A stretch of DNA of 64,000 bases from positions 62,001-126,000 of the IMG/VR virus record IMGVR_UViG_3300028840_002431; one strand, given 5' to 3'. The translations under genes and the position numbers were made by a program. Below, piece after piece: positions 13,198-60,217 of this stretch. Numbering within the stretch: the stretch's first letter is position 1; each line of letters starts with the position of its first letter. The notes beneath the pieces are model-generated. The model was given only the letters and a program-made list of their open reading frames with translations, did not search any database and had not been told where the DNA came from.

Positions 13198-14394
13198 GTG
13201 GACTCACGCTGGAAAACCTCGTCCGCCCTCCCTACCGAGATAAGGGAGCACCCCTTACTTAAGGCCGCTTCTAACAAGACGGCCACGTGGTGGAGAGGCG
13301 AATCCTTCCCCGACCTTGGTACCCATTTCGACAAGGGGCCAGCCACGTGGGCGGGCCTTGGACTTCTACGAAAGGCCCTCGAAGGAGGGGAACCCGTCCG
13401 GCAAGCCACCTGGGAAGGGAACCTGATTGTCCCCCACAAGGACTTGATCGAAGCCACGAAGAAGATACTGAATGTTCGGCCTCTGTACCTCACGGACTTT
13501 GGCAATAACAACGGTGTCGTACTTCTGGGTTCCGAGGACACCTGGGTCAATATCCGGCAAAGCGAGAGGGGCCAGACAGCGGATGTCCAAATCGTTACAT
13601 CCAGCCTTGAAGACGCCCTCAAGTCCGAAAAGCTCTTCAACGCTTGCATCCAGCCGGACGACCCCCGGAAGGGGTTAGTGTTTGCGCTGACCAAGTGCAT
13701 GACCGGGTACAGCCTTACCCGACTCGGTACTGCGGGCACACCGTTAGAAAGGGGTAACTACACGGACGCGGTCCTTGCTGACTATGACCACGTCGTCGCG
13801 GACCTCAAGACTCCAGGCCCGTGTGGAAGGCTGATTATATTTTCAGGATCTCCCGGCACCGGAAAGACTTTCCTGGTCCGCGCCCTTCTGACAGAGGTTC
13901 CCAACGCCGCCTTCGTCCTCATTCCTCCTCAGATGGTGAGCGACCTTGGTGCTCCGGAACTGTTGCCCGCTCTCCTCAACGCCAAGAACGAGATCAACGG
14001 CCCCATCATTCTCATCCTCGAAGACGGAGACAAGGCTCTCGTCAAGCGTAAGGATGGGGACATGAACACCATCTCGTCCCTTCTGAACCTGGGGGACGGT
14101 ATCCTGGGGTCCATCATGGACATCCGGATTCTCGCCACCACGAACGCCGAGACCCTGGAGATGGACCCGGCCACCCGCCGTAAGGGGAGGCTTTGCCGTC
14201 ACATACAAATCGATGCGTTGCCAGCCGAACAAGGCTCACAGATTGTCCAACGGCTCACCAACAATCCTTACACATTCAAGGGCGATACGGTCCTTGCCGA
14301 CGTGTACAGCGCCGCCCGTGAAAAGGGTTGGAAGCCAGCGGAAGTTGTGCCGCCCCGGCCAGAGGCGCGTCCCGAAATAATCGGTGTGTTATAG
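13198..14394 (+). CDS. AAA+ ATPase
   Basis: Walker A GSPGTGKT, Walker B LILEDGD, LLNLGDG, ATTN, DPA..RKGR. Confidence 0.9.
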   Translation: MDSRWKTSSALPTEIREHPLLKAASNKTATWWRGESFPDLGTHFDKGPATWAGLGLLRKALEGGEPVRQATWEGNLIVPHKDLIEATKKILNVRPLYLTDFGNNNGVVLLGSEDTWVNIRQSERGQTADVQIVTSSLEDALKSEKLFNACIQPDDPRKGLVFALTKCMTGYSLTRLGTAGTPLERGNYTDAVLADYDHVVADLKTPGPCGRLIIFSGSPGTGKTFLVRALLTEVPNAAFVLIPPQMVSDLGAPELLPALLNAKNEINGPIILILEDGDKALVKRKDGDMNTISSLLNLGDGILGSIMDIRILATTNAETLEMDPATRRKGRLCRHIQIDALPAEQGSQIVQRLTNNPYTFKGDTVLADVYSAAREKGWKPAEVVPPRPEARPEIIGVL

Positions 14395-25619: not shown

Positions 25620-25909
25620 CGTTTCCGCCAGCCGCCGTTCGCTCTAGACCGCCAATACTGAATCCAGTTAGTGCTACAGGTCTTGCACCGGTATAGCGAA
25701 GCATCTCGTATAGGTCGTCTGTCCCGCTCCAGGAGTCCCTTACAGTCAGGGCACTCGTACCCCCCGTCTGTCTTGGTGGGCTGTTCTTCGGACCCGTACA
25801 AGCCAGCGTGGAGACGCCGACCCGGAGGGTGTTCGAGAGCCTCGAAAAGCCGGTTTGACGCTTTCGCTACAGCGTCAGGATCGCTGAGTAATTTTGGTTT
25901 GTCGGACAT
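25616..25909 (-). CDS. zinc-ribbon hypothetical protein
   Basis: CPDC..CKTC, start MSDKPK (the longer ORF overlaps tmRNA). Confidence 0.6.
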   Translation of the reverse strand: MSDKPKLLSDPDAVAKASNRLFEALEHPPGRRLHAGLYGSEEQPTKTDGGYECPDCKGLLERDRRPIRDASLYRCKTCSTNWIQYWRSRANGGWRKR

Positions 25910-26025
25910 GGGTATAATTGATTGGCCTTGAAACGCACAATCTGGCCTGATCGGGACCAGCACGGGTGCCCTGTGCATCTTCACCCTACCCGGCACCGAA
26001 TAGGGTACGTGTTCCAGGGCCAATC

Positions 26026-26405
26026 GGTGGAGTCGGCGGGAATCGAACCCGCGTCCGAAAGTGCTACTAATTACCACCTCTACGTGTGTAGCTCCATTTC
26101 GTGTCTTTGACAGGAACACCACCGGAGCGGGCAAAACCTGGGGGCGGCCTCACGGCTGCCACTTCCACCACTGGTCTAAACAACCTTGATTGAGGACGAC
26201 CAGAGACTGCGCCTCAACTGCACCGGCTAATCGTCGCCCCATCCAAAGACGCCGGATTCTCTGGCGGGACGCCCTAGGCCGCGATGGCCAGGGGTGCTGC
26301 GTTATCGTTCGCAGTTATGTTTGAGCGGCTTGATAACCCGGCCAGCCGATCAACCGGGACACGCAGTAGTAAATTCCACACCTCCGTCGAAACCTTTACG
26401 ACCCC
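26026..26405 (-). ncRNA. ssrA: tmRNA, one-piece, tag ANDNAAPLAIAA (26274..26312)
   Basis: 5' GGGGTCGTAAAGGTTTCGAC, 3' GGACGCGGGTTCGATTCCCGCCGACTCCACC, G3-U70, resume context ATAACT GCG. Confidence 0.96.
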
Positions 26406-30845: not shown

Positions 30846-30970
30846 GAACGTTCGAGTTGCTTGAGCAGATTGGTTAGCAAAATGGGATTCGAACCCATGC
30901 CTTTCCGGTTGATAGCCAGATGTCCTTCCACTGGACGATTCGCTTGTATGCTCTGACAGATTGAACGCCC
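30846..30970 (-). ncRNA. tRNA-chimeric RNA copy 10: D, anticodon (ATC) and T arms, conserved domain replaces the acceptor stem
   Basis: GGGCGTT CAATC..GAGCA TACAAGC, tRNA arms, CTGCTC..ACTCG AACGTTC. Confidence 0.87.
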
Positions 30971-35548: not shown

Positions 35549-35940
35549 GTGTGGGGTAACGTCTTGATTTCCGATATCTCGTCCGTCAACTGTATCTGGT
35601 AGGGCGTGCTACCGACCAGCCTACTCAATATATCCCTCCGTTCTCGGATCTCCTGTGTGACAATGGCCTCTGTTAGCTTTCCCTTCTTGGAAAGTTCGCG
35701 CAATGTCTCGATCGATAACATATTAGACTCCTCTACGATCATGCGGGCCGCGAGTTTCTGACGCTCGAAAACCTCTCCCAGACGTAACCGGCCGATTTCC
35801 TCAATCTCCCCGGACAATATAGAAGGATATAACCCGCCTACCATTTGCTTCATCAGTTCTATGCGTTCCTGGATTTCGCCGTCAGCAACATCGATTAGCT
35901 CCTGAGTGCCAAGCTCGCGCAACTTCTCAATGGTCCTCAC
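35545..35940 (-). CDS. hypothetical protein with internal duplication
   Basis: IEKLRELG..EIQER repeated as IETLRELS..EIRER. Confidence 0.6.
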   Translation of the reverse strand: MRTIEKLRELGTQELIDVADGEIQERIELMKQMVGGLYPSILSGEIEEIGRLRLGEVFERQKLAARMIVEESNMLSIETLRELSKKGKLTEAIVTQEIRERRDILSRLVGSTPYQIQLTDEISEIKTLPHT

Positions 35941-36656
35941 CGTTCCTCCTGAGGCAATTCTTCCACGAGGCGCATAACTTCTTGTGCAACTTCTAACTCC
36001 CGGAGCCTTTCCCGGAGCTTAGGTGAGTGGGCTTGGATCGCTGGCATGGGGCCTTCTGACTCCAACCCCCACGCATCCCAGCCCCTGTATTGGAACCGGG
36101 CAAACAATTCGATACGAGGGATGTCTCCGAACAACTCCTCGATACGTTCCCTGGCCTCCGGAGGCTTCTCGGAATGCCGGGGCGGCCTAGGGGCGAAGAT
36201 CAGTTGTCCCTGGCTCTCCGTTTCGAGAGGCAACGTCCGCCCCTTTGCCTCAGTGGACCCTATAATAACCAACTCCGACTCTTCGGGAGGCTCCGTCGAA
36301 CCAACGATTACCAGTTCCGTTGTCGGCTTGACGAAGGAGGGTCTGACCCCCTGTCCTTTAATTATACGCCCGTCCTTCGTGGTCTTGATCCAGATGTAAC
36401 CAATACCACGATAGAAGAAGTCCCACATCCGCAGTAGGTCCACGGCTTCGTCCAGCTTGGGGCCGGTCGCCCACATGAAGATAACACCAGGAGGATCGAT
36501 AAGGCTGTGAACCGGGAGCTTCACAAGCTCGTCGAAGGGCATCATATTGAAGTGCTTGCCCGCCGCCTGATCCTTGTCCGGGTCTCCATAGTAATCCCAC
36601 GGAGGGTCCAGGTATATGAGCTTATAACGCCCGGCGAGCGACGCGAGTTCAATCAT
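35937..36656 (-). CDS. MT-A70 family adenine methyltransferase
   Basis: LIYLDPPW, HSEKP, RIELFAR, GWDAWG. Confidence 0.92.
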   Translation of the reverse strand: MIELASLAGRYKLIYLDPPWDYYGDPDKDQAAGKHFNMMPFDELVKLPVHSLIDPPGVIFMWATGPKLDEAVDLLRMWDFFYRGIGYIWIKTTKDGRIIKGQGVRPSFVKPTTELVIVGSTEPPEESELVIIGSTEAKGRTLPLETESQGQLIFAPRPPRHSEKPPEARERIEELFGDIPRIELFARFQYRGWDAWGLESEGPMPAIQAHSPKLRERLRELEVAQEVMRLVEELPQEER

Positions 36657-38142
36657 CTTGTTCCAAGTCGAACATCAATTCAAAAGCCTCTCGCTGAGAG
36701 GCTTCGTCGGCTTTGGTTTCCAGTTCCGGCTTCAAGGCCAACAAGCGTTTCCTCGCCAGCGCATGAGATTCTGGGTCCTTCTCGATACCTATGAAGTTAC
36801 ACCTAGAAGCGATGGCCGCCGCACACGTTGTCCCGGTTCCGCAGTAAGGGTCCAACACAACACCATCTACAGGGGTCACGAGTTTGACAAGCCACTCCAT
36901 GAGCTTCAACGGCTTCATGGTCGGGTGTTTGTTGTCTTCGTCGCCGGGCAACCATCCCCCACGCTCGCGTTTATTCACCTTAGCCGCGTACAGGAACGGC
37001 TCCTCAGGCTGGAACTGGCCGAAGTAATGAGGAGAGTCGGATTTCTGACGCTCCAACGCCTTGGCAGGGCACCCCTCCGCACACCTGTAGATAGGAAGCT
37101 CCTCCATGCCTTCGACGTCGCCGCGATGCTCAGAACTGTACGGATGCCCCGCTCCATCTCCAAACGGCTTCATGCCATCGTCAAAGCGGTTGATAACCGG
37201 AGCCTGTACTTTCTTATACCCTACGATCTTACAGCCGTCCGCATGTGTGACAACAAGGTTGGATGGCCAGCGCCCCTGATCCGTAAACGTAGCCCCAGTG
37301 CCGCGCCTGTAACCGGACCCGCCTTGTCCAACTCCCCACCCCTTTCCGTTTCTTACAGTACGAACTCCAGCCGTCGCTTGTCTTCGTCCGCTTGTTATTC
37401 TAGTGGCATCTATGTTGTATGCTCCGGTGCCGTGCGCCAATACATTGGAAGCCACCGTTGATTCTTCCAAAGGTTTCCGAAAAACGAGTATAGGCTCCCA
37501 CGATGGCTTGAGTGCCGTACCCCAACCCTCCCACGCCCATGCTTCTTTCGTCGCAGGGACTGTGATTGGAGCCTTGGACCAATCCATACGGTCACGCTCG
37601 TCGTGTCGCCCTTCTATCTCCCTCCAATTCTCGCTGATGGCGGCCGACGTACGCTTCTTCCCGTCGTATCTACCCCTAGGATCGTAGGTGCCCACCACCT
37701 GTCGTTTGGCCCCGGCCTCCTCATCGATGGCTTTTGATATATTACGGGACTTGGGGAAGCCTTGTCCGTAGACCCATTGCAGAACCGTACAGGCGAATTG
37801 CGAGGCCACTGTGTCCCGGTTCTCGAACCCAGCGGCTCTGATCCCCAAGGAGATGAGGTCAGAAGTCCGGGTCCCGCCAAAACTCAACAGGTGGCCGCCC
37901 GGTTTCAACACCCGGAAACACTCTTTCCACACGGAAACAGACGGGATGTGCCAGTCCCGGCCCATGAAATCCCCACCCGTATCGAGGTCGGAGTCTCCTG
38001 AGAGATAGGCTATAATCTCGTCGATTCCCGGTTCCCGGTCGCCAAGACCGTAAGGAGGATCGGTGACAATAGAGTCCACGGAAGCGTCCGGCAGCGTCCG
38101 GAGAACCTCTAGACACGTCCCCAGTAGAATCGAGTTCAACAC
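36649..38142 (-). CDS. N4/N6 DNA methyltransferase (beta class)
   Basis: VTDPPYG, HPTMKP, VLDPYCGTGTT. Confidence 0.93.
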   Translation of the reverse strand: MLNSILLGTCLEVLRTLPDASVDSIVTDPPYGLGDREPGIDEIIAYLSGDSDLDTGGDFMGRDWHIPSVSVWKECFRVLKPGGHLLSFGGTRTSDLISLGIRAAGFENRDTVASQFACTVLQWVYGQGFPKSRNISKAIDEEAGAKRQVVGTYDPRGRYDGKKRTSAAISENWREIEGRHDERDRMDWSKAPITVPATKEAWAWEGWGTALKPSWEPILVFRKPLEESTVASNVLAHGTGAYNIDATRITSGRRQATAGVRTVRNGKGWGVGQGGSGYRRGTGATFTDQGRWPSNLVVTHADGCKIVGYKKVQAPVINRFDDGMKPFGDGAGHPYSSEHRGDVEGMEELPIYRCAEGCPAKALERQKSDSPHYFGQFQPEEPFLYAAKVNKRERGGWLPGDEDNKHPTMKPLKLMEWLVKLVTPVDGVVLDPYCGTGTTCAAAIASRCNFIGIEKDPESHALARKRLLALKPELETKADEASQREAFELMFDLEQDD

Positions 38143-38151
38143 TCGACCAGA

Positions 38152-38970
38152 CTACACTGAAATCGGAAAGTCCTTGAAGCTTTTCTGCAACAGGGCGTTG
38201 ATCTTGGGCTTGTAGGTCATACCCCAGGACGCCTCTGTCAAGGGCTTGCCTTGCCGTGTGTAAGGGTCCGTCAGCTTGGACTCTATACCACGAGCAACGT
38301 CACCTATAATCTCACGGTCCGAATAACCCTCGATCAGAGATAGCTTTATGTAGAGAAGAGCGTCCGGATGGATGGCCTTCAATCTGGACTTGAGTCGGGG
38401 TAGTTGCCGCATGAGTTCTCGTTCGGCCGTCTCTTCATCGAACACCGGTATCTCGTGTCGGCGCTCCTGCCCCTGGCTGAAATAAACATCGCTGGTTTCC
38501 TTCTTCTTCCGAATGTAATTCTTGGTGTTCCACTCCAGCTTGTTCATCACGTACCGCTCGGCACTCCTGCGGGAGTATGATTCCTTCAAGGCGTCAGAAC
38601 CGCCGCCTAAGAAGTCCACCAGAAAATCGAGCATGACTTGTTCAGTCACCTGGGGTCCCTGGTGGAACTTGGACATGAGCTTCCGAAAAACCGACTTGCC
38701 ATACTCGCGCCCGTACCCACGTGGCAGGTAATTCGCGATCGGTTTCCGGGTAGCATCGAACTCAGAGGCTGGCTCCCCGTTGATATCAGGCATCCCATCC
38801 GTGATACCGTGGGCCAAGAATTCCCCGTAGATGGTCTTCCCAAACGCCTCTGTGGTGCTGACGGCCATACGAGAGAAGAAGTCTGCCAGCCGTACCGAAA
38901 AGGGCAAGGAGGCCCAGATCTGGCGGCGTAACGACCCCGAAGCCTGGATCAGGTGAGCAACTCGGTTCAT
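38152..38970 (-). CDS. putative divergent sigma-factor-like protein
   Basis: RYVMNKLEWNTKNYIRKK (region 2-like), LSLIEGYSDREI (region 4-like). Confidence 0.45.
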   Translation of the reverse strand: MNRVAHLIQASGSLRRQIWASLPFSVRLADFFSRMAVSTTEAFGKTIYGEFLAHGITDGMPDINGEPASEFDATRKPIANYLPRGYGREYGKSVFRKLMSKFHQGPQVTEQVMLDFLVDFLGGGSDALKESYSRRSAERYVMNKLEWNTKNYIRKKKETSDVYFSQGQERRHEIPVFDEETAERELMRQLPRLKSRLKAIHPDALLYIKLSLIEGYSDREIIGDVARGIESKLTDPYTRQGKPLTEASWGMTYKPKINALLQKSFKDFPISV

Positions 38971-38997
38971 CTCACCCGAAGCATACTAACAAAAGAA

Positions 38998-39957
38998 CTA
39001 ACTAAATTCGCGGGCTAACGGTCGCACCGTATCGATTACCGACTTACAGACCTTGGGCGGAAGCTCGGTATTTCTAAGGGCTTGCATAAGGGAAGCCCCG
39101 TTCTCCAACGACGTGAAGACCTTTGATTCGGTCTCCTTCACAGGCTTACAACCTTCCAGGCCGACCATGTGCTCGTGCAAGGTGTTAGAAAGCATCTGAC
39201 GAGCCTCGTCAAGGGCGATCATGGTGTCAGCGTTTGCCGACTTATCGGGAAGGGTTGACTCCCAAGCCGGTGCCTCCTCGTTACGCTTGTAAGCCGGGGG
39301 CGTGTACGGACGTTCCTTGTGCCGTCGCTCCTGGGTCCGACAGAAATTCGCGTAATGGTTCAAAACAGCCATAACCAGATAATTCTGGAACTGGGCCTTG
39401 GTCGGCTTCACCTCCGGGAACTTGAGATAACCCTCAGGACGACTTTCTCCTACAACAACTCCGTCCTGGACATCACGGCCCATCTTCCGAAAGGTTTTCT
39501 CTTCCAGAGTCAGTCGAATCACATCCTCGAAAGCGACCAGCGCGGTCTTAGCGTTGTAGCCAAACAGGCCCTGGACCTGGAATTCCATCAAGTTGATCGG
39601 AGTGGGCATCCAGTGGCCCCTCTTCCGGGGACCCGGCTTACGGGTCCCGTCCTTTCGCTTCCGTGGTTGGCCTTTGTGGTAGGACCACATAGCCGATTCC
39701 CACTGTTGCCAGGAAACCCCCAGGAAATCACAGGCTTGCGTAGCCGATAAAACCTTCGGGGTCTGGCGTTGTATTTTTGCCTCGAATCGGAGAAGGAGCC
39801 GGGCTTCTATCAGCTTCATCCAGATGTACGAATGCAAGTCCTCGAAGTTTCTCTCGATCTTGTTTGCCTTGAGAAGCACCGAATAGATAAGGCGTCCGTA
39901 CTGCCGTTCCAACTCATCGTAATTCTTGGGTATAACTGACACGTGTGACGATGGCAT
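38998..39957 (-). CDS. putative divergent sigma-factor-like protein with insertion
   Basis: YDELERQYGRLIY..FEDLHSYIWMKL and FQNYLVMAVLNHYANFCR resemble ECF regions 2.1-2.4. Confidence 0.55.
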   Translation of the reverse strand: MPSSHVSVIPKNYDELERQYGRLIYSVLLKANKIERNFEDLHSYIWMKLIEARLLLRFEAKIQRQTPKVLSATQACDFLGVSWQQWESAMWSYHKGQPRKRKDGTRKPGPRKRGHWMPTPINLMEFQVQGLFGYNAKTALVAFEDVIRLTLEEKTFRKMGRDVQDGVVVGESRPEGYLKFPEVKPTKAQFQNYLVMAVLNHYANFCRTQERRHKERPYTPPAYKRNEEAPAWESTLPDKSANADTMIALDEARQMLSNTLHEHMVGLEGCKPVKETESKVFTSLENGASLMQALRNTELPPKVCKSVIDTVRPLAREFS

Positions 39958-40562
39958 CAGTGGGGTCCCCGGTATATGGCTCGCTAGAAACGAGGTAAAG
40001 GTTTAAACAATTGAAATGTAGCGGTGAATCAGTAGGACTACCTCAGGCGTTGGTTAGTCGTCAATAAATAAAATCGGTTGGTACACGATTTTTTGTGGTT
40101 AGATAGGAAAAATAAATTGATACGTTTTAATCTGTCTATGAATTCTTGTGTGACTTTGGTTGGTTAAAGGTTAAACAGCTTTTTGGGTTTAGGTTTTAGT
40201 TTTCGGTTTATTGGAGTCTCTGGTTTCAGTCCGTCATCGACGATGTCGATGGGAAGATCTTTTAGCTCAACTCGATCTTCTCGTTACCTACTTCGCTGGA
40301 TACTGGACTGGAAAGAGTTGATTTCCCTAAGTATCCCTCCGCCGACCACCCTTCCGTCTGCAACCCACTTCTACCGGTGACGAAAAGACGATCGGAGCAT
40401 CCAACCTCTGATAGGTTGGCCAGAGCAGTTGGCCTTGTTCACCCTCCTAGGCTGCCTTAAGAGAGCGCCCTGCAAAGCAGGTATGGGGGCCTGAGGACGC
40501 CAAACCCATGCGGGTCAAACGGTTATACACCACGTTCCTGTCCGGTGGTGTAAAAAGGAAAC

Positions 40563-40877
40563 ATGGGAAACACTTTTTTCGTGCTGACCGACCTCTCCGA
40601 CTTCCGCGTCCAGGTTGGCGACTACGATTTCCTCCGGATAGGAGACAAGATAAGTCTGCGTTTTCGGCTGGAAAGAATGCACGACGGCCGTAGAGAAATG
40701 GCCGACGTAGACGGCGAGTTCCGTGTAGCGGCCGTGCAGATCGCCCACGGTCCAACAGGGTCCCGGCAGATCGCCCAGATCGCCGCTATCAACAAGCCCC
40801 CGTTCTGGAAAGCTATCAAGCTTTTGCCGCCCCGCGTTCTCCCCCCGGCACGCTTTCCCCCAACAGAAGTGAAGTAG
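40563..40877 (+). CDS. hypothetical protein
   Basis: GGTGTA-N10-ATG. Confidence 0.65.
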   Translation: MGNTFFVLTDLSDFRVQVGDYDFLRIGDKISLRFRLERMHDGRREMADVDGEFRVAAVQIAHGPTGSRQIAQIAAINKPPFWKAIKLLPPRVLPPARFPPTEVK

Positions 40878-41177
40878 CTCTATATGTTGGGCGTCCGTCC
40901 ACCGGCTCTCCACGACAGGCTGTGCCTTCCGCGACGAGGGTGTCTACAGCGAAGGCCAGATTTGCTTTGACCGGGTCCTCGTGAAACCACTCAACGTGAA
41001 GTCGGCCGGTGGCGGTGATGACCTTGTTCTCTCGCAGCCGTCGATAAATCGTCCGGCAGAACTCCCGGTTCAGTCCGGTGGCCTTCGCGATCTTGTCGGC
41101 GTTGGTGGTCTGGCAGTAGAACATGGCCAGCATCGCCCGGCCGACCACTCTCCCGTCCCCAACGATCCGTAAATCGT

Positions 41178-41648
41178 TTAGAGTTTGTTCAATCTCTCGT
41201 TCAGACTTGAGATCAATTCGAGGTATTTGCGGACGACGTTTTCGGCCGTCTTTTCGGTTCGCCATCTTCTGAACGGACTCGGCTCGGGCACCTTGGGCAA
41301 TTTCAGAGGCGGGACGGGCGGCACAGGCTTGGGCGGCACAGGCGGTTTCTCTGGTACCGGGGGGCGGATGGGCGCTGGCGGCGGGTCCACTGGAATCCTG
41401 GCCCTCTCTGGCTTCTGAGGGTACCGTGGCGGCTTCGGCTTCCCCCTCCATTGAGGTTCGCCCACCTCGTTCGGGCGGAGCTTCTGGAAGCGTTCTGGCT
41501 GTTCCTTGAGCGTTTCCGGCAGGACGTAGACGGTCCGACCCGTCTCCCGGTTCTTCACGGGGATCTCTTCGGCCCAGCGAGCCAGGACACGGTGAAGAAG
41601 ATCGCTCACCCTTACGTGAATCCATAAGAAGATGCTACACCGGGCCAC
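41178..41648 (-). CDS. proline-rich hypothetical protein
   Basis: PPVP repeats, RVLARWA and VVRKYL tags, start probably later. Confidence 0.6.
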   Translation of the reverse strand: MARCSIFLWIHVRVSDLLHRVLARWAEEIPVKNRETGRTVYVLPETLKEQPERFQKLRPNEVGEPQWRGKPKPPRYPQKPERARIPVDPPPAPIRPPVPEKPPVPPKPVPPVPPLKLPKVPEPSPFRRWRTEKTAENVVRKYLELISSLNERLNKL

Positions 41649-41886: not shown

Positions 41887-43296
41887 TTAGTTCAGTTTGG
41901 CCTCGGTCTCGCCAGAAGCAGTCTCGCTGGCGCTTCGAGCGGCCGGGAAAGACCTAGCCTTTCTTGTGCGCCATGTCCGGACCCTGGCCGACCGGAGGTG
42001 GGCCACGATCTTACTCCAGATCTTGGCCATATTACTGGCGTGGTCGTAACTCCGATGGGAAACCTCTTCCACCAGGACTTCGAGCGCCTTGTCGCGGTCA
42101 GCGAGAATTCGTCTGGCGACGAAAACCTGATCCTTGTCGCTCTTGTACATCCCGCACTTTGCCTCAGACCGAAAATCCACTATGCGGATGTCGTCGGGGC
42201 TGAGCCGATCCACCCGGTCGATGAGAAAGACCGCGCTATCCAGATTGGCCTTTTCCTCGGGTTCGAGGTCGGCCCACGAGTAGAAATTCACGGCCTCGTT
42301 CTGGAGCGCCTTCTTGATGTCGTACAGGTCGCCCATCTCGTCGTCGAGAATGGCCTTGAGAGGTTTGTTCGTGACCAGAACGCTCTTCTTGCCCAGCGTC
42401 TCGACCTCCTGGCCGTCCAGAACGGTCTCGACCGCGATCGCGTCTTCCCCGTGGTCGGCCTTGAACTTGGCCACAACCTGCTCTTTGAGCTTGTCGTCCA
42501 GTTGGCTCGCTCCCCAGCTATCCAGGCCAGACAGGTCCCGGTGCTCCCCTTGGAGAGCCTCCATGAACGGAGCGATTAGCTCTTCCCGCTCGGCTGTGGA
42601 GTGTTGCCAGATCATCCGGGTTCGCCAGTGGAGATCGTGCCGCATGACCATCTTCCGGTCCCGATCCACCTGGACATCCTTGTCCAGATCGTAGCCGAAC
42701 CGGATCTCCGGATCGTGCTCCACGAAAATCCCCTTCACGAAGATCTTCCCGGCGTACTCATTGTCCAGCAACAGAGCACCGTAGCTCGTGTTGATCCGAA
42801 GACGATCCTCTTTCTTCTTGAGGAACAAGAAGCACGCCTTCTTCTCTTCCCACCACTCCTTGTCGATGTTGCCGATCTCGACCTGAACACGCTCGACCGG
42901 CTTACGACCCTTGTCGATCCGGAACGTGAGCACGTCGGCCTTGAACTTCTCGGAGTGCTCGATCCGGGGCGTCCACACCTCCGAACCCGATCGGATCTTG
43001 ACGGTGTGCCCGGCACGCAACAGGGCCAAGGTGCCGTCCTTCAACCCCTCTCCGAACTTGCCCCGGAGTTCATCGTTGTCGGCCTTGGTGGTATGGCCGT
43101 ATAACAACGCCTCGTACGGAAGCGTGGTCCCCTTGTTCTCGATCACCAGCGTCTGAGCGTCGGCCCGATAACGCACGGTCAGCGGGGCATCGAATTCGTC
43201 GGCGGCGTCTGCCGCGTTTTGTAACAACTCCCGAACCCCTTCAAAGGTTCTCCAGTCCGGTAGGTGGTTGCTCTTGATGGATAGCTCAATTTTCAT
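41887..43296 (-). CDS. GHKL (HSP90/MORC-like) ATPase domain protein
   Basis: RELLQNAAD, GKFGEGLK, strong RBS, degenerate EEVSH near the C-terminus. Confidence 0.8.
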   Translation of the reverse strand: MKIELSIKSNHLPDWRTFEGVRELLQNAADAADEFDAPLTVRYRADAQTLVIENKGTTLPYEALLYGHTTKADNDELRGKFGEGLKDGTLALLRAGHTVKIRSGSEVWTPRIEHSEKFKADVLTFRIDKGRKPVERVQVEIGNIDKEWWEEKKACFLFLKKKEDRLRINTSYGALLLDNEYAGKIFVKGIFVEHDPEIRFGYDLDKDVQVDRDRKMVMRHDLHWRTRMIWQHSTAEREELIAPFMEALQGEHRDLSGLDSWGASQLDDKLKEQVVAKFKADHGEDAIAVETVLDGQEVETLGKKSVLVTNKPLKAILDDEMGDLYDIKKALQNEAVNFYSWADLEPEEKANLDSAVFLIDRVDRLSPDDIRIVDFRSEAKCGMYKSDKDQVFVARRILADRDKALEVLVEEVSHRSYDHASNMAKIWSKIVAHLRSARVRTWRTRKARSFPAARSASETASGETEAKLN

Positions 43297-58684: not shown

Positions 58685-58729
58685 TAAAAATAATGGAAGA
58701 TCAGATCACACTCAAATCGGAGGAGAAAG

Positions 58730-60217
58730 ATGACGAGACCTACGTTTGATGTTTCTAAGAAGGGGCTGGCGAAGACACTGACCAGACGCCCTATCGAGTT
58801 CGTCGTTCTGGAGTTAATTCAGAACGCCCTCGATGAAGACTCGACCCGTGTAGAGGTCGGAGTACACCCGGTCCCCGACAAGCGTGGCCTTTATACATTA
58901 CACGTCGAGGACGACAACCCGGAAGGGTTCAAAGACTTGAGCCACGCATACACACTCTTCGCGGAGTCGCTCAAAGGTTCCAATCCGGACCAGCGCGGGC
59001 GCTACAATCTCGGAGAGAAACTGGTCATCGCCGTGTGCCAGTATTCTTACATCCGGACCACGACCGGGACCGTAGAGTTCAAGGACGACCAACGGTTCCA
59101 TCGCCGCGAGCGTACCGAGAAAGGTTCCATCTTCCACGGCGAGATTCGGTTAAAGAAGGATGACTTGGCTCGCATCGAAGAAGCCGTGCGCCAGACCATC
59201 ATGCCGCCCGGTATCGAAATCTGGTTCAACGGTCGGATGAACGACGAGTGGCGACCCGAGAAAACGTTCGAAGCCACGCTGGCCACCGAGAAGACCGACG
59301 AAGAAGGCTACCTACGCCGGACCCGTCGGAAGACCAAGATCGAGGTCTACGAAGCCGACGGCGAAGCCCAACTTTACGAGATGGGTATCCCGGTCGTGGC
59401 CATTGACTGTGCGTGGCACATCAACGTCTGCCAAAAGGTCCCCCTCAACGTGGACCGGGACAACGTGACGCCCGCCTACATGAGGGAACTCCTCGCTCTC
59501 GTGCTCAACGAGATGCACGAGGAACTGGACGAGGACAACGCCAGGAGCGCCTGGGTTGACGAAGCCCTGGAGACCGGAGACATCAACAACGACGCCGTGG
59601 ACGCCGTCCTCACCGCCCGCTACGGAGAGAAACGAGTCGTTGCCGACCCCAGCGACCCGGAAGGCACGAAGCTCGCGGTGTCCAAAGGCTACAGTGTCAT
59701 CCAAGCCGGGTCCTTCAACAAAGCCCAGTGGGAAAACATCCGACAGAGCGGGGCCGTGCTCCCGGCCGGGAAAGTGACCCCCAGCCCCAAAGCTTGGTCC
59801 GACGACCCGGACGCGAAGATGGCCGACTACATCCCCGAAGACAAATGGTCGCCGGGCATGAAGCGGGTGGCCGTCTACGCCCGGAGACTCGCCTACCTCC
59901 TCATGGACGAGTCGAGCCTGACGGTTTCCTACGTCAGGGTGCCCAACAACTGGTCCGCCTGTTACGGACCGGGCGAGCTTACCTTCAACCTCCGGTGGCG
60001 GAGTAAGCAGTGGTTCGAGGACGCCCACTTCCATATCGAGGATCTGGACAGCCTACTCATCCACGAGTTCGGACACCACTACAGTTCGGACCATCTGAGC
60101 AAGGCGTACCACCGGGCGCTGTGCGACCTGGGAGCCAAGCTCAAGTCGCTGGCCATGTCCGGCAAGCTCCGAGAGCCGGTAAAGAAGCTGAAGCCCAAGA
60201 AAGAGAAGGCTGCCTAA
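58730..60217 (+). CDS. GHKL ATPase with C-terminal HExxH domain
   Basis: ELIQNALD, VEDDNPEG, GRYNLGEK, LIHEFGHH. Confidence 0.82.
   Translation: MTRPTFDVSKKGLAKTLTRRPIEFVVLELIQNALDEDSTRVEVGVHPVPDKRGLYTLHVEDDNPEGFKDLSHAYTLFAESLKGSNPDQRGRYNLGEKLVIAVCQYSYIRTTTGTVEFKDDQRFHRRERTEKGSIFHGEIRLKKDDLARIEEAVRQTIMPPGIEIWFNGRMNDEWRPEKTFEATLATEKTDEEGYLRRTRRKTKIEVYEADGEAQLYEMGIPVVAIDCAWHINVCQKVPLNVDRDNVTPAYMRELLALVLNEMHEELDEDNARSAWVDEALETGDINNDAVDAVLTARYGEKRVVADPSDPEGTKLAVSKGYSVIQAGSFNKAQWENIRQSGAVLPAGKVTPSPKAWSDDPDAKMADYIPEDKWSPGMKRVAVYARRLAYLLMDESSLTVSYVRVPNNWSACYGPGELTFNLRWRSKQWFEDAHFHIEDLDSLLIHEFGHHYSSDHLSKAYHRALCDLGAKLKSLAMSGKLREPVKKLKPKKEKAA

Follow-up and report, generated by a model that had tools for sequence, protein, structure and literature searches.

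Do two adjacent, highly diverged open reading frames (ORFs) in the genome of a very large bacteriophage encode sigma factors and, if so, which promoters would they serve? The question is raised by positions 38152-39957 of a 64,000-nucleotide stretch of DNA (hereafter, the window), which corresponds to bases 62001-126000 of the 416,539-bp IMG/VR virus record IMGVR_UViG_3300028840_002431 (CheckV completeness 87%). An original prediction had read the two genes as phage sigma factors for two promoter classes seen in the window. Our answer, to which we assign a probability of roughly 70%, is that the pair represents two distantly related group-4 sigma factors of the extracytoplasmic function (ECF)-like type that redirect the host RNA polymerase, with the hexamer GGTGTA as their best candidate target. 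In what follows, the genome-wide record is labelled G000, and L001-L008, L015, L016, and L017 are loci from related phage records. Translation table 11 sufficed as the genetic code, and the phage is counted among the ‘huge’ phages because the window carries 44 tRNA genes and a transfer-messenger RNA (tmRNA) gene. Its sequence is present in three DNA metagenome runs (sediment, seawater), the source of the assembly. The 173,051-bp IMG/VR record UViG_3300017963_000197 is 100% identical to G000 over the loci fetched (L001/L017), so that one phage has been filed at least two times at differing lengths.

The upstream gene, P0002, and the downstream gene, P0001, are back-to-back ORFs on the minus strand separated by a 27-nt gap; the recurrence of both in related phages (described below) confirms that they are real, conserved, and adjacent. 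Their parts, in window coordinates, are as follows:

38998-39957, minus strand: P0002 gene (ORF; 319 aa plus stop), a predicted ECF-like sigma factor with an insertion inside domain 2
39799-39957, minus strand: P0002 residues 1-53, regions 2.1/2.2, with the predicted contact to the beta' clamp helices (Pfam, co-fold)
39400-39798, minus strand: P0002 residues 54-186, insertion domain, predicted small alpha/beta fold (AlphaFold model, conservation)
39313-39399, minus strand: P0002 residues 187-215, putative regions 2.3/2.4 helix, FQNYLVMAVLNHYANFCRTQERRHKE (profile alignment, TIGR02985)
39001-39231, minus strand: P0002 residues 243-319, four helices forming a C-terminal domain that may be a diverged sigma-4 (AlphaFold, structural alignments)
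38152-38970, minus strand: P0001 gene (ORF; 272 aa plus stop), a predicted ECF-like sigma factor with an N-terminal extension
38731-38970, minus strand: P0001 residues 1-80, conserved N-terminal extension of three helices plus a loop (family conservation, AlphaFold, structural alignments)
38476-38730, minus strand: P0001 residues 81-165, predicted sigma domain 2
38155-38442, minus strand: P0001 residues 177-272, predicted sigma domain 4, including EGYSDREI

For P0001, the evidence comes from the family as a whole. A profile of 141 family members searched against 177,635 PDB sequences matched SigH (E = 1.4e-7), SigR (1.7e-7), a SigH/SigE chimera (4.2e-6), SigL (6.5e-6), and SigE and RpoE (4e-4 to 4e-3), and its significant matches were ECF sigma factors exclusively; an alignment of 13 P0001 sequences gave non-significant PDB matches only. 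The alignment to SigH runs from region 2.1 through the start of region 4 and sets P0001 residues 213-222 (IEGYSDREII) opposite EGFPYKEIAE, the region-4 start of M. tuberculosis SigH, which bears out the earlier reading of EGYSDREI in the downstream gene as region-4-like. Among the 141 members, 16 match Pfam Sigma70_r2 and four match Sigma70_r4_2. The AlphaFold model of P0001 (predicted local distance difference test, pLDDT, 92; predicted template modelling score, pTM, 0.79) has a sigma-2 and a sigma-4 domain joined by a low-confidence linker at residues ~162-178, and structural alignments indicate that the complete sigma-4 helix-turn-helix (HTH) is kept, with an extra loop of ~20 residues separating its two helices. 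The first ~80 residues, modelled as helices 3-21, 24-35, and 37-53 followed by a loop, are the best-conserved part of the family and have no counterpart in ECF sigma factors; structural alignments of sigma-2 domains begin at residue 36-48 or 75. As judged by profile homology and predicted fold, P0001 is an ECF-like sigma factor.

P0002 is, on the same kinds of evidence, a sigma factor with a split domain 2. Residues 18-53 resemble positions 3-38 of Pfam Sigma70_r2 (E = 0.042, below the cut-off), the NCBIfam model TIGR02937 matches with E = 6e-4, and TIGR02985 matches at residues 187-260. Sigma70_r2 is matched by 25 of 51 P0002-family members, and P0005, a homologue 70% identical to P0002, passes it outright with 25.6 bits against a cut-off of 24. 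The two families also find each other. The P0001-family profile matches all 52 P0002-family sequences tested in two collinear pieces flanking the insertion, with profile positions 84-128 falling on P0002 residues ~8-56 and positions 134-200 on ~185-260; P0001 and P0002 are therefore distant relatives of one another. A direct hhalign comparison of the two families gives weak links (E = 4.8e-4, probability 32%), and P0002-family profiles searched against the PDB yield non-significant matches only.

The original prediction had noted a long insertion between the 2.2-like and 2.3-like segments of the upstream gene. This insertion measures ~130 residues (54-186), with the second half of region 2 resuming at about residue 187, and it is deduced from three observations: the split profile match, structure alignments that cover residues 3-215 with only 75-90 residues aligned, and a homologue, P0225, in which Sigma70_r2 positions 45-71 are matched at residues 165-190. 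In the AlphaFold model of P0002 (overall pLDDT 85), the insertion is predicted at pLDDT of about 80-97 and contains a strand-helix-turn-helix stretch at 69-94 (HTH-like at 72-94), a basic loop, a WMPTPIN motif, and further strands. WMPTPIN is invariant in the P0002 family, including M117, P118, P120, and N122. We suspect, from viewing the model by eye, a fold of the excisionase- or MerR-like winged-helix type, and there is a weak match to phrog_668, ‘HTH DNA binding protein’ (E = 0.1); family scans, a viral structure library, and ESM Atlas fold and feature searches assigned the insertion to no known family or fold. The alignment with SigH places it in the F-R-x-G-x-N-L-K loop between the region 2.2 helix and the 2.3/2.4 helix, a loop that forms the pocket for the flipped -10 base in ECF sigma factors. 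The 2.3/2.4 helix itself is among the best-conserved parts of the protein, with F190, Y193, L194, N200, N204, R207, and R211 invariant. Beyond a disordered stretch (~216-242 in the model), the C-terminal domain comprises helices 243-264, 273-285, 290-296, and 301-318. This domain may be a diverged sigma-4: whole-sigma structural alignments extend to residue 319, and the P0001-profile alignment reaches the start of region 4 in P0015, P0224, and the L015 homologue L015_351.

Sigma domain 2 (regions 2.1-2.4), the fold on which the original prediction had staked its case, is present in both AlphaFold models, and its claim of ECF region-2-like patterns in both genes agrees with the SigH profile match and the Sigma70_r2 matches among relatives. 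The layout is that of group 4 within the sigma-70 family, with no region 1.1, no domain 3, and a short linker between domains 2 and 4; both proteins additionally carry parts foreign to ECF sigma factors, namely the N-terminal extension of P0001 and the insertion of P0002. ECF sigma factors typically, though not by definition, have a co-transcribed anti-sigma factor and an autoregulated bipartite promoter. Pfam finds no anti-sigma domain in the genes neighbouring the pair, which encode a winged helix-turn-helix (wHTH) protein and two DNA methylases, and an ECF-type bipartite promoter (AAC ... CGT type) was not found upstream of the pair, where TTGAC-N18-TAG stands instead. Foldseek, a check that had been proposed at the outset, gave a divided result: sigma chains top the lists for both models, with sigma-2 domains dominating the matches of P0002, but no PDB match falls below E = 1e-3 for either protein. 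The viral structure library and the ESM Atlas fold search returned nothing useful for P0002.

The second proposed check, co-folding with the polymerase beta' subunit, was applied to P0002. Three runs pairing its residues 1-225 with residues 225-345 of E. coli beta' each gave an ipSAE of 0.69 against 0.07 for the best control; 51 of 78 solved complexes and two of 108 mismatched pairs reached that mark. At least 80% of the contacts are common to the runs, at a partner pLDDT of 54-56, and the interface joins beta' 274-298 (clamp helices) to P0002 residues 13-17 and 39-51 (region 2.1/2.2 helices). The predicted interface looks like canonical sigma docking; because sigma-beta' complexes have already been solved, passing the mark indicates likeness rather than binding. 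Together with the profiles, this bears on the objection that the two genes encode ordinary HTH regulators or unrelated helical proteins resembling sigma factors by chance. Such an origin is scarcely credible and is largely refuted by profile E-values down to 1.4e-7 against ECF sigma factors only, by tens of relatives that match Sigma70_r2, by structural match lists made up mostly of sigma chains, and by a co-fold interface that is both specific and canonical.

Relatives of the two proteins are all metagenomic, and many come from contigs 80-453 kb long. In a 5.8-billion-protein collection, 66 relatives of P0002 were found, the most distant at 24% identity and on contigs of up to 453 kb, and the P0001-family profile gathers 254 clusters at 50% identity; a few JGI relatives of both proteins are auto-labelled ‘sigma24 family’. 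A tblastn search of P0001 and P0002 against 50,697 GenBank phage records gave no match, and alignments of both families against 185,579 species genomes found no relative. Both families are confined to a clade of huge phages. One member record, G004 (the record of L006, 255,478 bp), is classed as ‘provirus’ by IMG/VR, and if that class is right, its flanks could reveal the host of the clade. The order of the pair is strictly kept: in each of the eight IMG/VR loci that a search with the P0002 family brought up (G000 itself is among them), a P0001 homologue directly follows the P0002 homologue. The pair persists in the much more distant phage of L015, where P0150, of the P0001 family, lies downstream of a 351-aa gene that matches the P0002 profile at 4.5e-57. 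In L016, P0200, a more distant P0001 relative, occurs without a P0002-like gene immediately upstream, on a locus too short for judging association with GGTGTA. Scans with distant P0001 relatives and with the 13-sequence P0001 alignment brought up no new phage with only one of the two sigma factors.

What would these proteins read? The hexamer GGTGTA is over-represented in the window (52 observed versus 21 expected), and CGGTGTA is the top-enriched 7-mer in the 120 nt upstream of genes genome-wide (56 versus 8.5 expected). The 265 GGTGTA sites stand in a tight register with start codons. Measured from the first G to the start of an ORF of at least 60 codons, 35 lie at 15 nt, 18 at 16 nt, and five at 17 nt, so that 58 of 265 have a start at +15 to +17, with about one to five at each other distance; examples in the window with a start 15-16 nt on are 19750, 22785, 12503, 51188(+), and 61003. 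This association reaches 22% for GGTGTA, in contrast to 0-9% (0.00-0.09) for each of the 18 single-base variants and a background of 3.7%. Since the variants are at or near background, all six bases matter. The extended consensus is cGGTGTA(A/G)TaTA, and no -35-like partner is apparent. Of the 35 sites at 15 nt, 27 have a pyrimidine at -1, and the start base in this class is A or G; a Shine-Dalgarno core occurs in six of the 58 spacers, and 45 of the 58 starts are ATG. The motif is also found in other contexts: GGTGTAATAT lies 24 nt before the mature 5' end of the tmRNA gene, which uses no start codon, and GGTGTA precedes Shine-Dalgarno-led genes at a greater distance.

The same geometry recurs across the clade. 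Five further phages with the sigma pair contain 47, 39, 28, 22, and 8 copies of GGTGTA-N9-10-ATG, compared with 3, 7, 8, 0, and 0 for the reversed control and 9, 8, 7, 3, and 1 for the off-register control, and the motif is present in the distant L015. In G002 (the record of L003, 411,618 bp), an identical 18-mer, GGTGTAGTAATAGATATG, occurs 11 times (e.g., 134083-134100, 141527-141544, and 241443-241460), with more than 10 further copies of near-identical variants (…AAGT…, …AGTT…); these repeats copy the whole stretch from motif to ATG, as if a promoter-start cassette had spread. Two simple accounts of GGTGTA were considered and set aside. The first is a variant Shine-Dalgarno sequence, ruled out by spacing, by mismatch to the 16S tail, and by the presence of the motif before the tmRNA gene; against the CACC of the anti-Shine-Dalgarno sequence at the 16S 3' end, GGTG at 11 nt from the start is too far away, and TA does not fit. 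The second is a methylase target, ruled out because it would leave the fixed distance to start codons unexplained. Taken together, the observations fit a single-element promoter, with transcription starting 6-7 nt after a 9-10-nt element and yielding leaderless mRNAs, and are a poor match for a ribosome-binding signal.

GGTGTA is missing from the front of the sigma operon itself, which has a different upstream signal and two methyltransferase genes behind it:

40035-40064, minus strand: TTGACG-N18-TAGTCC, a candidate sigma-70-like promoter ~80-110 nt upstream of the P0002 start
39979-39996, minus strand: small hairpin, CTCG-loop-CGAG, within the sigma operon's predicted 5' leader
35937-38142, minus strand: two DNA methyltransferase genes after P0001 (N6_N4_Mtase 36649-38142, MT-A70 35937-36656)

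TTGAC followed by TAG or TAC at similar spacing can be read by eye in L001-L006, and an alignment places both elements in L001-L004; TTGAC is not enriched elsewhere in intergenic DNA. The element would serve as a host-type early promoter of the sigma operon. Inverted repeats of differing sequence were read by eye at the equivalent leader place in L002 (7 bp) and L005 (5 bp). The first methyltransferase gene starts 9 nt after P0001, and the two methyltransferases (497 aa, E = 9.6e-29 for N6_N4_Mtase; 239 aa, E = 1.1e-22 for MT-A70) probably belong to the same operon as the sigma pair. In L008 and L015, too, a methylase gene lies behind the pair, on which grounds sigma-sigma-methylase appears to be a conserved early module.

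These observations bear on the most credible competing account, in which P0001 and P0002 are indeed sigma factors but have weaker, undetected motifs as their targets, GGTGTA being either recognised by a host sigma factor or an RNA-level signal, for processing or for translation from start codons 15-16 nt downstream. Early- or middle-looking genes behind the motif, a fixed start-codon distance as expected of a translation signal, the resemblance of TA plus a weak atat to a -10 hexamer, and the rare motif wAGATCAGAT before a few large genes (see below) are in its favour. It is harder to square with the textbook reasoning on the anti-Shine-Dalgarno sequence given above, with motif copies ahead of the tmRNA gene and Shine-Dalgarno-led genes, with a pyrimidine at -1 and a purine at +1 as befit a transcription start, with six essential bases, unlike host -10 hexamers, and with a sigma operon that lacks the motif and uses a TTGAC-type element. 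We regard this account as unlikely on balance, while giving it real weight.

The original prediction had assigned the two proteins to two promoter classes. A role as phage sigma factors for the host polymerase is the natural reading and the GGTGTA class is real and strong, but only co-occurrence in the clade ties it to either protein, and no second widespread class emerged. After masking of GGTGTA, word enrichment returned AT-rich words only, and no dyad (5-mer, N14-19, 4-mer) stood out from a random-segment control. Apart from the single conserved TTGAC-N18-TAG element before the sigma operon, the one candidate for a second regulatory or promoter motif is wAGAT(C/T)AGAT, with seven sites in 416 kb, six of them intergenic. 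Its sites include one in the window at 58697-58706(+) and genome sites at 14393, 391976, 394767, 394782, and 410511. It precedes a few large genes, including 58730-60217 of the window, with two tandem copies before one gene, and the genes behind it have no PHROG function.

With one strong promoter-like motif in the genome, P0001 and P0002 could alternatively be a single unit, that is, a two-subunit or cooperating sigma factor serving one promoter class. Cooperating pairs are known from SPO1 gp33/gp34, T4 gp55/gp33, and B. subtilis SigO-RsoA, and the strict same-order adjacency in 8/8 loci and in L015, as well as a sigma-4 that is weak in P0002 and good in P0001, fit such a division of labour. 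Each protein has its own complete sigma-2, though, and both would need the same clamp-helix site on beta', while P0200 in L016 lacks a P0002-like gene immediately upstream; we consider a joint unit quite unlikely.

Our preferred reading, two separate sigma factors, would work as follows. The sigma operon, with its two methylases, would be transcribed early by the unmodified host enzyme, as suggested by the position of the pair at the head of a methylase operon behind a conserved TTGAC-N18-TAG. Both proteins would then bind the host core RNA polymerase and confer phage promoter specificity, region 2.2 docking on the clamp helices of beta' and, in a protein that has it, domain 4 on the beta flap. 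The candidate target would be cGGTGTA(A/G)TA, a single element without a -35 partner, and transcription would begin 6-7 nt after it, either at the A of the start codon, giving a leaderless message, or a short way ahead of a Shine-Dalgarno sequence or of the tmRNA. Host-polymerase use, early expression, leaderless starts, and most of all the recognition of GGTGTA by either sigma factor are inferences.

Several points have to be set against this scheme. What connects the pair to GGTGTA is co-occurrence in the clade, and the hexamer could act at the RNA level. The genes behind it lie mostly at 60-311 kb; an ExoV/Dda-like helicase and a glycosyltransferase are among them, as are many small ORFs and the tRNA region, so that the class looks early or middle and a host sigma factor could read the motif. 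P0001 alone matched no family in Pfam, PHROG, and NCBIfam scans; neither protein by itself reaches the curated family cut-offs (Sigma70_r2/r4_2, TIGR02937), which some relatives pass, P0002 scoring 14.1 bits against 24 for Sigma70_r2 and 19.5 against 42.9 for TIGR02937; and none of the 51 P0002-family members has a region-4 Pfam match. The co-fold possibly recalls solved sigma-beta' complexes, and the beta' used is that of E. coli, which may not be the host's. Pfam models of the beta and beta' catalytic domains found nothing in the 416-kb record and responded in 14/14 control genomes, although the record is 87% complete and diverged phage polymerases can escape Pfam; host core RNA polymerase is expected as the partner on this absence, as the simplest reading. 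Among the runs found to contain the phage sequence, the three DNA metagenomes, there is no RNA run.

A further possibility is that P0001, P0002, or both act as decoys derived from sigma factors, which would shut off host transcription by occupying the host core polymerase or displacing its sigma factor while reading no promoter. An insertion in the very loop that reads the -10 element in ECF sigma factors, a doubtful sigma-4 in P0002, and a conserved N-terminal extension without a known role in P0001 are what one might expect of a decoy. The strongly conserved 2.3/2.4 helix of P0002, with its seven invariant residues, and the complete sigma-4 HTH retained in P0001 are not, and a phage without its own polymerase needs a reader for a motif as specific as GGTGTA; decoys are thus improbable. 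Carrying the promoter-reading interpretation further, P0002 might embody a new sigma architecture, in which a folded, possibly DNA-binding domain of ~130 residues replaces the -10 loop, reads GGTGTA as a duplex without a -35 element, and drives leaderless transcription throughout the clade (250-450 kb), P0001 serving a separate temporal class. We put this forward as a speculation that is doubtful as it stands.

Further upstream of the sigma operon, GGTGTA reappears at two genes:

41636-41641, minus strand: GGTGTA site 16 nt ahead of the start codon of 40816-41625, the wHTH gene that adjoins the sigma operon on its upstream side
40547-40552, plus strand: GGTGTA site 16 nt before the start of the divergent small gene 40563-40877(+)

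The wHTH gene matches PF24409 (E = 2.4e-4), and in L002-L008 the corresponding position upstream of the sigma pair holds a minus-strand GGTGTA that is followed 16-18 nt later by a start. An intergenic region of ~600 bp (39958-40562) separates the sigma operon from the divergent gene. Besides the TTGAC-N18-TAG element and the leader hairpin, it holds a further GGTGTA at 40526-40531(-), followed only by an ORF of ~20 codons; L002, L004, and L005 show weak conservation of some of its parts, and no Rfam family was found in it. The gene at 41887-43296(-) is preceded by GGTGTA plus a strong Shine-Dalgarno sequence and encodes a 469-aa protein similar to PHROG 6077 (function unknown; E = 1.9e-61), whose N-terminal RELLQNAADA-type motif resembles, by eye, a GHKL/MORC-type ATPase.

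Elsewhere in the window, ARAGORN calls the 44 tRNAs and the tmRNA at 2058-31894(-), and Rfam confirms 36 of the tRNAs. Nearly every amino acid is represented, and some of the anticodons are of the unusual A34 type: Asp-ATC (30871-30945), Leu-AAG twice, and Arg-ACG. The complete tmRNA at 26025-26405 scores 136 bits and encodes the tag ANDNAAPLAIAA. An additional ‘permuted tmRNA’ call at 25655-26119 overlaps it without Rfam support and is probably an artefact.

How do the two proteins compare with known systems? They share with the ECF sigma factors (SigH, SigL, SigE, and SigK of M. tuberculosis, SigR of S. coelicolor, and sigmaE of E. coli) the arrangement of sigma-2, short linker, and sigma-4 without region 3, the profile match over regions 2.1-2.4 plus a region 4 that opens with EG.s..EI, the predicted folds of sigma-2 and sigma-4, and, for P0002, the predicted contact of region 2.2 with the beta' clamp helices. 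They differ in an identity of only ~10-20%, in the ~80-residue extension and ~20-residue region-4 loop of P0001, in the ~130-residue domain of P0002, in having no anti-sigma gene seen adjacent, and in being phage-only, with none in the 185,579 species genomes. Several sigma-like genes per phage, tied to temporal classes, are familiar from T4 (gp55 plus gp33) and SPO1 (gp28, then gp33/gp34), and T4 late promoters consist of a single -10-like element without a -35 partner. This phage resembles both in having more than one sigma-like gene, and its putative promoter resembles that of T4 late genes in being a single element.

The closest parallel in promoter form is phiEco32, whose sigma factor gp36 has no region-4 homology and recognises one element only, tAATGTAtA, transcription starting 6-8 bp beyond it (PMC8948821); PDB 9m7y shows gp36 together with the helper protein gp79 (PMC12276001). 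P0001 and P0002 would likewise be highly diverged phage sigma factors using the host core, with weak or absent region-4 homology, and the predicted promoter shares a single TGTA-core element, GGTGTARTA here versus tAATGTAtA there. GGTGTARTA itself occurs and is conserved, start codons lying 6-7 nt beyond it. The gp36 chain is among the structural matches of both models, and no detectable sequence relationship or specific structural relationship links gp36 to P0001 or P0002. ‘Group 2’ jumbo phages, which lack an RNA polymerase of their own, encode sigma factors that recruit the host enzyme and that are either minimal single-HTH proteins or RpoD-like and accompanied by a T4 gp33 orthologue (Iyer et al. 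2021, PMC7824862). Unlike these, P0001 and P0002 are both ECF-like and have no relative in the 50,697 GenBank phage records.

In summary, phage sigma factors as such are already known, including those of jumbo phages without polymerase genes. New here are two phage-only families at the edge of detectability, a domain inserted in the sigma-2 of P0002, a conserved N-terminal module in P0001, and a GGTGTA word that is all-or-none and, throughout a clade of phages of 250-450 kb, placed in leaderless geometry. Both families are unnamed as sigma factors in most records, even though the P0001 family spans 254 clusters. Their recognition gives a transcription model for the clade, in which a host-type promoter would drive the sigma operon and the sigma factors would in turn act on a six-base promoter word at the start codon; the model predicts dozens of leaderless genes per genome and offers an annotation rule, namely that GGTGTA-N9-10-ATG marks true gene starts in the clade. 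The pair may also supply orthogonal sigma-promoter pairs for synthetic biology, and the insertion of P0002 could show how promoter specificity gets rebuilt.

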